A stretch of DNA of 64,000 nt from Oculina patagonica (GCF_052425735.1 NC_135758.1:36580001-36644000), one strand, 5' to 3'. Positions 2,472-37,139 are shown, counted from the first letter of the stretch. Notes: generated by a model not told the origin, from the letters alone. Program-made: numbers and translations.

Positions 2472-3896
2472 ATGGCTTGGACTTCAACTAACTCCTGGTC
2501 CAGGTCAACCTCCCCGACAAACTCTCCTTATCTAACCGAGGTGCCAACCATCCCGGACTATGCAATACCATTGGTGCCGCCAACAAGAAAACCGGACACT
2601 TTACTCCCCAAAATCAGCCTGGCTATTCGAGTTGTTCTCTTTGTTATCTGCTTAATGGAAAACAGCATCGCTATTTTTATTCTGTACAAGAGCATCAGGA
2701 AAGGAAGAAAAACGTTTGCTCGATGCACACTGATCAGTGTGGCGTGTGCAGATATTTTAAGCGCCCTTCTTTACTACCCGGCACAGTTTGTCTGGTTTTC
2801 TCATGGTGAATACGTTTGGCTCGTTAAAGGTCAGGCTGGAAATGTACTGTGCAAAATTTATGCCTTCCTCGCTCAAATTCCTGGCGAGGTTATTGTTCTT
2901 TGCTTGGTTGCTCTGGCGTGCGACGTGACCAGAAATTTGTCCACCAAAGGCCGAGGGGAACACACACAAAGATTCAGCGTCATTTTAATGGTTTTCGTTT
3001 GGATCATCGCTGCAGGCCTCTCGTTCATGTACATTTTTATATAATAATGAACAAGGTTGAAAACAAAAAGTGCGTCACTGATCCGGCTCAACAGATGACG
3101 AAGTTCATGATGGATTTAATTCACTCCTTTATGTTCGTGGCACCTGCTGACTTGATTCTGATGATTCTAAATCTTGTCATCTTTTGCCGAGTTAAGAGGA
3201 GAAAAAAGGAAATAGCTCGTCGCAAACGAGAGACGACGAGGGCTGGAAAAATGAAAGTTCGACGCCAAAAGAAGCGGATCAGAGACGTGAGAAACGACAA
3301 AGTTGTGCAGTTCACAGACGAAGCTCGGGAGATGCTGTCAAGCAAAAGCTCTGAGCCTGGTGGAGAAGTTTTCGCTGCCGAAAGCAGCAACACTGAAACC
3401 TTTATTGAGATGTCCACTGAATCTAACAAAGGCAGCGATACTAGTGACGTCGCTGTTGGCGAAGAAGATGCTTCAAGCAGTACCGATCAGTCTGTAGTAG
3501 AGGTAAAGTCTCGAAATGACACAAGAAGAGGCGAAGATCGAGAGTGCAACATCGTTTCTTTTCGTCATCATATCAATAATCTTGCTGATTTTGCTGTACA
3601 TTTGTGAAGGTCCTGAAGGTCGTCGGTGCAGCGAGTATGTGTTTTTTGCCATTCAGATCGCGGTGGACATCTATGCAGCTATCAAACCTGGTATTTACCC
3701 TATTACTGATAAGGAATTCAGAGAGAGATACAAACAGTTTCTCTCTTCGCCTGCTGCTGTTTTAGGCAGATACGATGCCACACAGTGCCGCAACAAGTGG
3801 GAACTACAAGCAGTCTTTCTGGCCAAGAAGGCGGTGTGTGAACACAGAGTAGCGGACTCATCCTGGAGTGCACTCCTAAGTACACTGTCCAGTTAA
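2472..3896 (+). CDS. Intronless class A-like 7TM receptor, frameshifted at about 3034-3045 and about 3513-3516 (assembly error or recent pseudogene)
   Basis: Three overlapping ORFs join into TM1-4 (ENS in TM1, SVACAD in TM2, Cys at the start of TM3, VWI in TM4), then ECL2 Cys, TM5 and a long ICL3, then TM6-7 (KPGIY) and helix 8 (KEFRERYKQF). Confidence 0.75.
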
Positions 3897-32808: not shown

Positions 32809-33145
32809 CATCTCCTTCCCTAACCCCTTCCCTCAACCCAGATGTAGCGAGTTGTTGTTGATGATCTTGATGGACTAACACCGCGTCCAGACTAGCGGCC
32901 CAAAAACAGGAATCGTTTCACGTGTTTCTTTTTCTCTTGTTTGTGACGAACGGACGATGCTAGATCCCGTTTTGATATTCTCGAATTTATTGACCGTACC
33001 AAATAATAGGAATATGTTCTCAGCTGTCTAAAGTTCAGTCCTCAACCTTTTGATTTGCCGTGAAAGAAGGAAAAGAGTAAGAATAAAATAAGGTCAAAGA
33101 AAATTTCTTTTCCAAAAAGGTCAAATTTCATTAACATTGAAAAAA

Positions 33146-33188
33146 TTATTATTATTATTATTATCATTATTATTATTATTATTATTAT
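33146..33188 (+). repeat. (ATT)n microsatellite, left flank of the retrotransposon
   Basis: About 14 ATT units with one ATC. Confidence 0.95.
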
Positions 33189-36100
33189 GCTCTAAATACT
33201 GGAATTCTACGCAACAAACGAAATGTCGACTACATCGCGAGGCAAGCTGAAATGGACCGAAAAGATGAATAATGACCTACTCGAATGCAAGGCGAGAGCT
33301 AAGGATCTTGTGACATCAGACACACCACCATGCAACGAGAACGGCAGGAGAAAGGGATATATTGTAGTGATGAAGGAGTTATGGGATGAGAAAGGCTATG
33401 CGCATCTTGAAATTAAGAGCCAGAACCTCAGAGATCAAGCTTCTAGACTCGAGAAAATTGATCACACGGTTGGCTCAAGCGCTCCCGCAAGAAAGAACCA
33501 GGAAAAGGATTCGAGATGCAATCGCGTACAAGATTCGAGCGGAAGTGAGCATCAGAGGACTTTAAACCAAACTTCTCAGAAAAAATCCAATCCTAGAAAA
33601 CAGAATACATGTAATACAGCTCTAAATGCTAATTGCGTGGATTCGGAAAGTTTGATGGATTTGCATATGGCAGTGGCGCGATCCCCAGAGAGACCTACAG
33701 CTACAGAGAGTGATGGTTCCACGCAAAATATCCAAGAACAACAAGAACCAGTAAACGCCTCGGTTAATGAGATGACTAATGACTTGAGCGAAGCCCGTGC
33801 ATGCGTGCACTTACCAGGACGGTTGCCTGACTACAATGTTGTTGACACTCCATTAATTATTAATTGGGGGCGAAGAGCGGATGGGAGTACAATAACAGTC
33901 TATTCATCAGTCATAACAAAAGCCTATGATGAGATTACACAATGGCGTAAAAACACCTTCCTTGTCCCTTATGGGAAAGTCGGGCGAGAGTTTATCGATC
34001 AGCTTACGACGCATATAACCGACTGGAACAATGCAACGCAAATGCAACACATAGCGCTCAAAGCTGCCATTGTTCTCCTAGCAACGACGCTACAAAAGCC
34101 AAGCATGAAGTCAAAAGCAAAAATTCATCAAGAGTGTCTGGCTAAGCGCTTAGCGCTTTGGAAAGAAGGTGAAATTGATAGTCTGCTTCGAGAGGGGAGG
34201 TCTATCCAAAAACGCCTTGTTAAGACCAAGAGGACAGAACCACCAAATAAAGCTAAGATATTCGCCAAGCTAGTCATGGAGGGACAGATTAATTCAGCGT
34301 TGAGATACCTCAGCGAGAATGAGTGCGGCGGCGTGTTACCGCTGACCGATGACGTCATGGGCCAACTAAAAGATAAACACCCTGAGGCACAAGAAGCAAA
34401 GCTCGGCTCGTTACTCTTCGGACCAGTTGAAGAAGTGCATGACTCGCTCTACCAGCAAATCGATGGCGATATGATACGCGAGGCGGCGTTACGAACAAAA
34501 GGCTCTGGTGGTCCCTCAGGCGTCGATGCAAACGGTTTCAAGCGAATTCTTGCTTGCAAATCATTCAAGAAATCGAGTGCAAACCTATGCGATGCCTTAG
34601 CAAAAACGGCAAGGAGGCTCAACACAGACTTTGTCGACCCTCGAACCATTGAGCCATTTCTAGCCAACAGGCTCATCCCTCTAGACAAAGGCGAAGGCGC
34701 GGTCCGCCCCATCGGTGTTGGTGAAGTCATCAGGAGAGTGATTGGGAAATGTGTCATGAAGGTGACCAAACAAGATGTGATCGAGGCTAGTGGTTCGCTA
34801 CAAGTATGCGCAGGCCTCAAGAGTGGAAGCGAAGCCGCAGTCCACGCCATACACTCTATATTCGAAGCTGATGAGACGGATGCTGTACTCCTGATTGACG
34901 CCTCAAATGCATTCAATGCACTAAACAGAGCTGCTGCCCTCCACAATATTAGAGTACTCTGCCCACCTATTGCAACGTACGCTATCAATACGTATCGAGA
35001 ACCAGCAAGATTATTCATAATCGGAGGGAAGGAGATCAAGTCTGCAGAGGGTACAACGCAAGGAGATCCTCTAGCGATGGGAATTTACGCCATCAGTCTA
35101 CAACCTCTGATTACTCGTTTGGGGATTTCGAACGATTTGAAGCAGTGCTGGTTTGCCGATGACGCGAGTGGTGCAGGTTCATTGGAAGATATCAAGCGAT
35201 GGTGGGATGTGCTGACTGAGGCAGGACCTGATTTGGGGTACTACCCTAACGCCAAAAAGTGCTGGCTTATTACGAAACCCGACAAGAAGGACCATGCTAA
35301 AGCTATCTTCGAGGGGACTGCGATAAACATCTCTACGCAGGGACAAAAACATCTAGGCGCCGCTCTGGGCTCTCGAGCTTATCTCGAAGAGTATGTCGAT
35401 GGAAAGGTTGAGGAGTGGGTGAGCCAGGTGGTAAAGCTAGCCGAGTATGCCACATCAAACCCACAGGCGTGCTATGCGGCATTTACCTTCGGACTACGCC
35501 ACCGCTGGACATATTTTCTCAGAACACTTCCCGATATAGAAGATCTATTAGAGCCCCTGGAGCGTGCTATTGCAGATGTACTAATACCATCAATCACTGA
35601 TCACCACTGCACAAAAGAAGAGAGGGACCTAGTGGCACTTCCAGTGCGGCTAGGGGGGCTTGGACTTATTAATCCAAGCCAGGATGCAGCGTCCCAATTC
35701 AAGGTGTCAACCAAGATCACAGCGCCCCTAGTCGAGAAAATAATCGCACAGGATCATGAAACACCGGCTGATACTGCTGTCAAGACACTACAGCAGTGCG
35801 TGCGAAGAGAAACCAACGAAGCGCTTCAGACTAGGCTTGGCAATGTCAGGGAGTCTCTACCTCAGAAGACACAACGAGCCATTGATCTCGCAACCGAGAA
35901 AGGTGCTTCTAACTGGCTCACGGTCCTCCCATTAAAGGACATGGGCTACAACCTGAATAAAGGCGAGTTCCGAGATGCTGTAAAGCTCAGGTACGACTGG
36001 GAAATTGAGGACAAGCCGACAGTGTGCGTGTGCGGTGACGCCTTTACAATCGATCATGCAATGATTTGTAGGAGAGGCGGATTCATAATTCAGCGCCATA

Positions 36101-36868
36101 ATGAACTCCGTGACCTCGAGGCTGACTTGCTTAAGATGGTCTGTAATGATGTCGAAATAGAGCCCGTCCTTCAAGAACTGACTGGAGAGAGGCTACCAAG
36201 CGGCGCTAACACAACGCCAGATGCTCGCCTAGATATACATGCCGGGGGGGTTTTGGGAGAAGCAGAGATCCGCGTTCTTTGATGTGAGGGTGTGTCACCC
36301 CAACGCGGATTCCTACAAGGACCAAACCCCCAAGCAGATATACCGTAACCATGAGAATGAGAAGAAGAGGGCTTACGCAGACAGGGTTCTTCAAGTAGAA
36401 CAGGGAACTTTCACTCCATTGGTGTTTACATCCACCGGAGGAATGGGCGAGGAGTGCAAGAGGTATCACAGTAGGCTTGCAGAATTAATCGCCGCAAAGA
36501 AAGGGGAGGATTACGCAACAACGGTGTCTTGGATCAGATCAAAAGTCTCATTTGCGATCCTCCGATCCGCCTTAATCTGCCTAAGGGGATCAAGAACTGT
36601 AAAGAGAAACAGGAACATTGACATTTATGATATGGACTTTCAAGTAGAGAATTCTCGTACTGCAATTTAGATCGAATATATATATTTTTTTTAATATATA
36701 GTTCTTCTTTTATTATTGCTCTCGAAGTCGCTTTTACTATTTTTCTACATTTTTAGAGACACTGTTTTTATTATTATGTAAATAATATGTTTATATATAA
36801 AGTTCTTATTCGAATAGTCAAATCATTGTAATTCTTTTAGAAATTGGTTAATAAAGTTTTTATTTTTA
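33188..36868 (+). mobile_element. Non-LTR retrotransposon of the REL-endonuclease group (CRE-like), apparently full length
   Basis: Single long ORF with RT, CCHC knuckle and PD-(D/E)xK nuclease; about 35-nt 5' leader; about 200-nt AT-rich 3'UTR with AATAAA at about 36850; (ATT)n on both sides. Confidence 0.9.
33223..36670 (+). CDS. Retrotransposon polyprotein (N-terminal helical domain, RT, CCHC, REL endonuclease), about 1148 aa if one extra G at 36244-36250 is removed
   Basis: [60 protein letters not shown]...[19 protein letters not shown] then GFW...FFDVRV, EKKRAY, FTPLVF in the +1 frame. Confidence 0.9.
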
Positions 36869-36892
36869 ATTATTATTATTATTATTATTATT
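36869..36892 (+). repeat. (ATT)n microsatellite, right flank of the retrotransposon
   Basis: About 8 ATT units. Confidence 0.9.
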
Positions 36893-37139
36893 AACATTTA
36901 ATTGAAACTTTGATAGTTAAAAATCCTTTCGTCGTTTAACCGACGAAAGGATTCAGTCTCTTTAACAATTTCACTTAAAACTTAATAAATGATATGTATA
37001 ACACTACGTGCCCACCTGCTAGATTTACTGATACAGCATCGGAGAAGTAGTAAAGCAAAATGGGACAAAAAAATGTGAAACAAAAGCTGCTTCAGAGAAA
37101 AGTTTATTTATTTCGATTTGTAGGCGTCCTAAATGCTTT

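Follow-up and report, generated by a model that had tools for sequence, protein, structure and literature searches.

A LINE copy in an (ATT)n microsatellite

The 64,000-nucleotide stretch of Oculina patagonica DNA analysed here (GCF_052425735.1 NC_135758.1:36580001-36644000; hereafter the window, with positions counted from its first letter) carries on its + strand a copy of a retrotransposon, the body of which spans 3671 nt (33189-36859) and is bracketed by an (ATT)14.7 run at 33145-33188 and a (TTA)11 run at 36860-36893. Both runs were called by Tandem Repeats Finder (TRF) and had already been pointed out in the original prediction, a note made from the sequence. The full-length element, about 3.8 kb long, is a young, autonomous retrotransposon without long terminal repeats (LTRs)—a long interspersed nuclear element (LINE)—with one open reading frame (ORF). 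Judged by its sequence, this ORF encodes a reverse transcriptase (RT), then a CCHC knuckle, and then conserved residues of PD-(D/E)xK type, the arrangement that defines LINEs with a restriction-like endonuclease (RLE). We consider it probable that the window holds a 5'-truncated, frameshifted copy of an (ATT)n-targeted element in which a catalytic core of the CRE-II lineage is joined to a Myb/SANT-like N-terminus homologous to that of Dong/R4 elements, most likely gained by recombination. The features of the copy are listed below (aa, amino acids; UTR, untranslated region).

33145-33188, + strand: 5' half of the targeted (ATT)n microsatellite, with 14.7 units (TRF; same orientation 5' of 24 of 30 copies)
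33189-33222, + strand: 5' UTR remnant, 34 nt, with an in-frame TAA at 33193-33195 (first ~145 nt missing relative to the full-length copies L002 and L003)
33223-36282, + strand: ORF piece A, 1019 aa, which begins at the start codon and is closed by a stop arising from the frameshift (intact homologue, L002:1536-4979)
33244-33462, + strand: N-terminal three-helix Myb/SANT-like domain, aa 8-80, presumed (TTA/TAA)n-binding module (AlphaFold2 model, structural matches)
33250-33288 and 33418-33456, + strand: N-terminal motifs quoted in the original prediction (found in the window translation)
33835-34662, + strand: conserved pre-RT region, aa ~205-480 (alignment; common to all CRE-II relatives whatever their N-terminus)
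34687-35274, + strand: reverse transcriptase fingers/palm, aa 489-684 (Pfam RVT_1; motifs match Cre-1_HM)
35050-35079, 35146-35169 (WFADD) and 35638-35664 (PVRLGGLG), + strand: RT motifs (window translation)
36025-36069, + strand: CCHC zinc knuckle CxCx7Hx3C, with C935, C937, H945 and C949 (invariant in 19 relatives)
36094-36376, + strand: putative restriction-like endonuclease core of PD-(D/E)xK type, split here by the frameshift (invariant alignment columns)
36094-36114 (RHNELRD), 36223-36243 (ARLDIHA), 36275-36301 (FFDVRV) and 36359-36376 (EKKRAY), + strand: motifs of the nuclease region (window translation)
36244-36250, + strand: private +1 frameshift in a G-run (comparison with 29 other copies)
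36239-36670, + strand: ORF piece B, second frame, C-terminal ~140 aa, stop at 36668-36670 (ORF calls)
36671-36859, + strand: 3' UTR with AATAAA at 36850-36855 (the sequence common to all copies ends 2-4 nt past the hexamer)
36860-36893, + strand: short T/A-rich tail, then the 3' half of the (TTA)n target (TRF, copy comparison)

The copy is defective at two points. Its ORF starts at the ATG at 33223, downstream of the in-frame TAA, and the original prediction had read the short leader of about 35 nt together with this start as complete; the start codon is indeed present, but the leader is not the natural 5' end. The full-length copies L002 and L003 share a 146-nt extension upstream of GCTCTAAATAC that is 99% identical between them, beyond which their flanks differ, and the L003 extension directly adjoins an (ATT)n tract. 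Because these two copies continue further upstream, the 34-35-nt leader of the window copy is a truncation product in which the start codon was kept. The second defect is the private +1 frameshift, where the window reads ...GCCGGGGGGGTTTT... and all 29 other copies read ...GCCCGGGGGTTTT...—that is, CC followed by seven G at 36242-36250, as against CCC followed by five G in 29 of 29. The frameshift splits the nuclease domain, such that the RT and nuclease motifs quoted in the prediction are all present but lie in different frames, with ARLDIHA in one and GFW, FFDVRV and EKKRAY in another. The intact ORF encodes 1148 aa and is uninterrupted in both L002 and L003; all protein analyses used this natural sequence from other copies, with no repair or merging. 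Being both 5'-truncated and frameshifted, this is a dead copy. The architecture itself is no chimera of assembly or annotation, since it recurs in three full-length copies and in homologues from several other assemblies.

Copies of the family in the genome

A DNA search of the 529-Mb Oculina patagonica assembly recovered at least 40 copies at 97-100% identity, and the family is young and probably recently active. Among the 30 loci that we examined (of which L013 and L014 are one locus assembled twice), 27 are 5'-truncated at positions staggered between 1229 and 2583 of the 3671-nt body. The examined copies share a single 3' end and have no LTRs; together, the common 3' end and the staggered 5' truncations form the classic signature of target-primed reverse transcription. 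Past the AATAAA hexamer, the copies continue into variable T/A-rich stretches, often with a run of 5-14 A, and then into (TTA)n.

Several further observations concern the ends of the copies and their annotation. In L003 and L009, positions 3487-3667 of the 3' UTR are tandemly duplicated (~180 nt), marking a sub-variant of the family. In L002 (G000:C1721), the closest (ATT)n upstream is separated from the start of the element by ~230 nt of unrelated sequence, possibly extra sequence captured at the 5' junction. The true 5' terminus carries a motif, ATGGCG ... GAGCTCC, that is conserved between species (L002:1356-1500, L003:1356-1500; L068:348-420; L069:~400-470). Its Oculina form is ATGGCGGC, which we take to resemble a YY1-type site like that at the 5' end of human L1, and the window copy is without it. 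We infer an internal promoter in the part of the 5' UTR that is missing from the window copy, and the conserved motif may be part of it. Finally, three NCBI gene models of Oculina patagonica (P0001, P0005 and P0006) are 'hypothetical proteins' that fuse the retrotransposon ORF with Death, peptidase M3 and Fe-hydrogenase-like Pfam domains; truncated insertions have probably misled the gene prediction into making these fusions.

The (ATT)n target and the orientation of the insertions

An (ATT)n run of at least four units lies within 60 nt upstream of the element at 24 of the 30 loci, and (ATT)n lies within 80 nt downstream at 26, whereas the complementary (AAT)n orientation was found at none of the 30. 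Most of the loci without a flanking repeat are explained by a 5' extension, a contig end, an assembly gap or a short three-unit run. As background, ~0.4% of window positions fall within 60 nt past an (ATT)n run of at least four units. With both flanks so far above this background and in a single orientation, (ATT)n must be a real target. The upstream repeat, furthermore, pre-dates the insertion, since it directly adjoins different internal break points in differently truncated copies; the original prediction had allowed that ATT might be only a tail, and the tabulated flanks speak otherwise.

Target-site duplications are not readable inside microsatellites, but one off-target copy at a non-repeat site (L019, G000:C6:31800171-31801862) has a 14-bp duplication, ATTCTATTCATCAA, that encloses an (ATT)4 tail. 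Because this tail lies within the duplication, the template RNA can evidently end in (UUA)n. The association with (ATT)n also extends beyond Oculina: we checked relatives of the same N-terminal type, at 62-70% protein identity, in four other assemblies, of which L069 and L071 are flanked on either side by (ATT)n oriented as in the Oculina copies, L070 has (ATT)n at its 5' side with the 3' flank beyond the sequence covered, and L068 is ambiguous.

The targeted tracts have features of their own. At no fewer than 8 of 27 loci, an AATAAA stands within ~12 nt ahead of the upstream (ATT)n (L007, L008, L010, L011, L017, L023, L025 and L026; also L071:250-370), and some upstream flanks are repeated, with L007 and L011 89% alike over 111 nt and L009 and L025 98% alike over 148 nt; two upstream flanks share ...GCGCTATATAAAT.... 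Judging by these hexamers and repeated flanks, many of the targeted tracts resemble tails at the 3' ends of other retroposons, themselves similar to short interspersed nuclear elements (SINEs), and such SINE-like retroposons may be non-autonomous partners of this LINE.

A catalytic core of probable CRE-II lineage

A word-based search with the RT-nuclease part of the protein returned more than 800 relatives, including proteins of the corals Porites, Acropora and Montipora and of Nematostella at 64-70% identity and many at ~50%. Pfam RVT_1 matches aa 489-684 with 29.2 bits, just below the 29.6 cut-off (relatives reach 42-44 bits), and the matches in the ESM Atlas are exclusively to RVT_1 clusters. 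For reference sequences we used the RepeatMasker-labelled rows of an alignment that Mahbub et al. 2017 (PMC5678591) give as a supplement; RT, linker and knuckle of the element agree motif by motif with the row of Cre-1_HM (LINE/CRE-II). The shared motifs run from RLIPLDK..RPIGxGEVxRRxxGK, LLIDAxNAFNxLNR..ALHNI, NTYRxPAxLFIxGG, WxADDA and GYYxNxxKCWLI, through TYFLRT, KGASxWLxxLPxK and LNKxEFxDAxxLRY, to CxCG..HAMxCxxGGF, while the motifs of the Dong_pol, HERO and R2 rows of the same alignment disagree with the element.

The knuckle points the same way. It reads CVCG in the element, and C-LCG, C-VCG, CVCG and C-ACG in the CRE1, CRE2, Cre-1_BM and Cre-1_HM rows, respectively. An arginine is conserved between the first two cysteines in R2, Dong, NeSL and Utopia (PMC5678591); unlike these, the element has none. 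A search of the Protein Data Bank (PDB) with the element protein gave no R2 chain at E<=1. Downstream of the knuckle, residues RH958-959, E980, D1004, D1020, E1044 and K1047 are invariant in 19 relatives. The strong motif-level match over RT, linker and knuckle argues that the core, which runs from the pre-RT region through the RT, an alpha-helical linker and the knuckle to the putative endonuclease, belongs to the Repbase CRE-1_HM lineage (RepeatMasker LINE/CRE-II), in line with the CRE-like RT that the original prediction had recognised.

A Myb/SANT-like N-terminus with Dong-type relatives

The Pfam scan found no C2H2 finger and no other N-terminal family in the element protein, and the ORF scan likewise found none of the C2H2 fingers whose absence had been noted before. 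Instead, the first 80 aa, which are common to all relatives at 62-70% RT identity, show the pattern KWTE.MN.DLL.CK ... NGR.KGYI..M.ELW..KGY ... QNLRDQA.RLEK. The AlphaFold2 model of this region has three helices (13-31, 46-62 and 66-79) and a mean predicted local distance difference test score (pLDDT) of 84, and an exhaustive comparison with VIA-align placed Zeste, DMAP1/TIP60, GT-1, LUX, TRF1 and the R2 Myb domain at the top, with Z of 4.3-5.8. We regard a Myb/SANT fold, which the original prediction had expected, as moderately supported by the model, and the domain presumably binds (TTA)n.(TAA)n DNA.

A profile search of 1.8 billion representative sequences found the domain in 512 proteins. 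The best 150 are mostly short fragments, and 22 of these could be typed by their downstream sequence—16 as CRE-II-type and 6 as Dong-type. The longest Dong-type carrier, P0267 (1250 aa), is 42.5% identical to the N-terminus of the element over 80 aa (BLASTP E 4e-16), which bears out the likeness to R4/Dong that the original prediction had drawn. BLASTP found no similarity between the two proteins outside this region, and the global identity of their RTs is 24.9%. P0267 agrees instead with the Dong_pol row (NW.SPG.DKI.NFW.KK, RPITC, ID..KA.DS..HSWL, QGDSL.P), has a CRLC knuckle and RHD and RPD motifs, and matches R2 proteins in the PDB at 4e-18. Its contig, L043, ends directly in sense-strand (AAT)n, and a second Dong-type contig, L072, starts with (AAT)16. 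Given a 42.5% identical N-terminus and dissimilar RTs, the same domain sits on two unrelated RLE-LINE cores, both found in the TAA/TTA microsatellite but in opposite orientations. This pattern supports the mosaic of a Dong-like targeting module and a CRE core that the original prediction had proposed, and the Cre-1_HM motifs place the RT outside R4, where it might otherwise have grouped. A word-based search with the P0267 N-terminus returned P0267 alone.

In the Oculina genome, the Myb-like domain was found on two kinds of element only: this family, with three full-length copies, and a single older CRE-II relative that is degraded. The latter, L060 (G000:C5:7902361-7905665), has 8 stops and is 42% identical to the CRE-II protein P0073; because it too starts with a Myb-like domain, it represents a second, older family of the same architecture.

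N-terminal domains change on a common core

The N-terminus is the variable part of these elements. CRE-II relatives at ~50% RT identity carry Cys-rich (CCxCNxxGxCxxCxC), C2H2, PHD or OTU N-termini; compared with the Cys-rich relative P0073, for example, the element is 51% identical from the RT to the end but only 20% identical in the N-terminus, which is to say unrelated. In a tree built from the RT-nuclease part of 27 full-length proteins, sequences of the Myb type form one group and the Cys-rich type another, each with support of 100 in the Shimodaira-Hasegawa-like approximate likelihood ratio test (SH-aLRT). Each other N-terminal type also groups alone, and N-terminal type undergoes the minimum possible number of changes on this tree. 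The Myb-like N-terminus hence marks one clade and is not a standard feature of CRE-II families, a point that the original prediction had left open. Four copies of a Cys-rich element lie at four different non-repeat sites, two of them with target-site duplications (12 and 8 bp). In the cases examined, then, target choice follows the N-terminus and not the core.

The OTU type is represented by P0117 and its cluster, where the RT of a CRE-II relative is preceded by a domain like the OTU cysteine proteases (Pfam E 1e-3, motif DGNCFFRC). The proteases of NeSL and Utopia, by comparison, are Ulp1-like.

In a tree of the N-terminal domain, five of the six Dong-type sequences fall in one clade (99/98), the Dong-typed fragment P0214 falls among CRE-II N-termini, and the two groups are joined by a branch (~0.4) that does not exceed those inside either group. 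Because the usually fast-evolving N-terminus is 42.5% identical where the slow-evolving RT is ~25% identical, and because the separating branch is of no greater length than those within the groups, these sequences favour, though they do not prove, domain exchange by recombination over shared ancestry. Transfer was probably from Dong/R4 to CRE-II, since the literature records the domain across Dong elements of several phyla (PMC7998251) and it is found in one clade of CRE-II.

Comparison with known elements

The closest known elements are Cre-1_HM (Hydra; Repbase) and Cre-1_BM, with motif-by-motif agreement through fingers/palm, thumb/linker and knuckle and, as we read the published row from RT to knuckle, ~55-60% identity; both Cre-1_HM and the element have a single ORF in which the RT precedes a CxCG knuckle. 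Against the sampled CRE-II clades, that of the element is set apart by its Myb/SANT-like N-terminus and its (ATT)n specificity.

Dong (Bombyx mori) and Dong-like elements resemble it in targeting the TAA/TTA microsatellite and in having a single ORF with an RT and a C-terminal RLE. They differ in the RT (~25% identical), in the knuckle (CRxC in Dong, CxC in the element) and in polarity, with (TAA)n on the sense strand of Dong and (TTA)n on that of the element in all informative loci; at the 5' junction of Bombyx Dong, the sense strand reads (TAA)7 (PMC3774820). The 3' ends also differ, as the Dong-type contig L043 ends directly in (AAT)n and the element ends past AATAAA with T/A-rich or poly(A) tails. 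Dong is further known for a 5' ribozyme resembling that of hepatitis delta virus (HDV) (PMC3774820); in the full-length 5' UTR of the element, we found no Rfam match at E<=10 and no match to a P1/P2/P3/P1.1 descriptor, searches that have limited sensitivity for pseudoknotted ribozymes.

The trypanosomatid elements CRE1, CRE2, SLACS and CZAR have in common with the element the RT motif D..NA(F/Y)N...R and a C-x-CG knuckle. They are site-specific for the spliced-leader gene, their RT is only distantly similar, and their N-terminus carries C2H2 fingers. Trypanosomatid CRE elements make target-site duplications on insertion (PMC3636483), as do the off-target copy L019 (14 bp) and the Cys-rich relatives (12 and 8 bp). 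R2 shares the order of an N-terminal DNA-binding module including Myb, then RT, linker, CCHC and RLE, and the N-terminus of the element has its Myb domain (8ibw, residues 142-205) as one of its structural matches (Z 4.3); R2 differs in having zinc fingers besides Myb and a unique rDNA target (28S), and no sequence match at E<=1 was found.

Some RLE LINEs are already known to be specific for microsatellites, among them Dong for (TAA)n, Togen for (TG)n and several families of HERO (PMC4640811); Togen (NeSL-related) and HERO likewise target simple repeats, but they belong to other clades and use other repeats, and the motifs of the HERO-2_DR row are unlike those of the element. CRE-II families in Repbase are also established, as is the Myb/SANT-like N-terminus of R4/Dong, which was published in 2021 with cnidarian elements included (PMC7998251). 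We found no description of the combination of a CRE-II core, a Dong-type domain, (TTA)n specificity and inverted polarity in the full texts searched, where CRE-II appears only in passing, in two genome papers; Repbase may contain one.

Alternative explanations and proposed history

One alternative is that nothing is chimeric and the element is an ordinary cnidarian member of R4/Dong, with N-terminus, (TAA)n target, RT and RLE all standard for that group. Myb/SANT-like N-termini do occur in R4/Dong, including in the cnidarians Exaiptasia and Acropora, and in most insects, molluscs and cnidarians the target of Dong is (TAA)n (PMC7998251); like Dong, too, the element is without an N-terminal zinc finger. 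Nevertheless, we reject this explanation as very unlikely: RT, linker and knuckle match Cre-1_HM and not Dong_pol, similarity by BLASTP to a Dong-type protein is limited to the N-terminus, that protein matches R2 in the PDB strongly where the element has no R2 match at E<=1, the CxC knuckle is without the arginine conserved in R2, Dong and NeSL, the orientation in the repeat is opposite, and no HDV-like 5' ribozyme was found. An even smaller probability attaches to the proposal that (ATT)n is merely the element's own 3' tail, the upstream repeats being tails of earlier insertions entered by annealing of RNA to DNA, with no role for the N-terminal domain. The (ATT)4 tail inside the L019 duplication and the AATAAA hexamers ahead of upstream tracts, like those before the tail of another retroposon, would fit. 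Even so, insertions would still keep to (ATT)n with a single orientation (24 of 30 loci, where 0.4% is expected), Cys-rich CRE-II relatives with the same core and also with A-rich tails lie at different non-repeat sites (four copies), and the association with (TAA)n/(TTA)n tracks the Myb-like domain across two unrelated cores.

A more serious alternative, though still an unlikely one, involves no exchange at all: RLE LINEs would have had the Myb-like N-terminus from the start, Dong/R4 and a single CRE-II branch would have retained it under strong constraint from their common target, and the other CRE-II branches would have replaced it. R2 also has an N-terminal Myb, which is among the structural matches, and the N-terminal tree splits mostly by core type, as expected from vertical descent. 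What tells against it is the inverted pattern of identity, the higher value lying in the usually fast N-terminus and the lower in the usually slow RT, along with the separating branch that is no longer than those within groups, the unrelated N-termini of all other sampled CRE-II clades, and the position of P0214 among CRE-II N-termini. Recombination of a CRE-II core with a Dong/R4-type N-terminus, then, is the reading that we prefer, and several points count against it. The two separate groups formed by Dong-type and CRE-II-type N-termini would also be expected from an old common origin with strong constraint. The placement in CRE-II comes from comparing motifs with a published supplementary alignment and not from a phylogeny. 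The Myb/SANT fold has modest structural scores (Z no higher than 5.8), and its model gave no significant match with Foldseek against the PDB and none in Pfam. The model of the C-terminal nuclease has a pLDDT of 60, and neither a structure search nor a profile search of PDB sequences gave an informative match; because the model is poor and the searches uninformative, the PD-(D/E)xK assignment is drawn from the conserved residues. The Dong-type proteins come from metagenome contigs, and the Oculina genome yielded no Dong-type element with the domain.

On the preferred reading, the Myb-like domain would bind the (TTA)n.(TAA)n duplex and the endonuclease would nick the strand carrying (TAA)n, a choice of strand that we infer. 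The freed 3' OH would then prime reverse transcription of an element RNA that ends soon after AATAAA in a T/A-rich stretch—a (UUA)n and/or poly(A) tail—and frequent early termination would give rise to 5'-truncated copies. As to history, we lean towards a CRE-II element having acquired the Dong/R4 Myb/SANT-like domain and with it the TAA/TTA specificity, inserting with opposite polarity because its core nicks the other strand.

Significance

Site-specific RLE LINEs such as R2 are under development as tools for DNA insertion at chosen sites, and it is still a central question to what extent their N-terminal DNA-binding module determines the target by itself. The elements described here offer a natural comparison of interest for the study or engineering of site-specific retrotransposons, with one CRE-II core carrying at least five different N-termini and one Myb-like N-terminus carried by two unrelated cores. 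If true, the exchange would make the N-terminal domain a portable target determinant, demonstrated by evolution. Among cnidarian elements with a (TAA)n target and a Dong-like N-terminus, at least some fall outside R4/Dong by their RT, and for the coral genome, the family marks and extends (ATT)n tracts.

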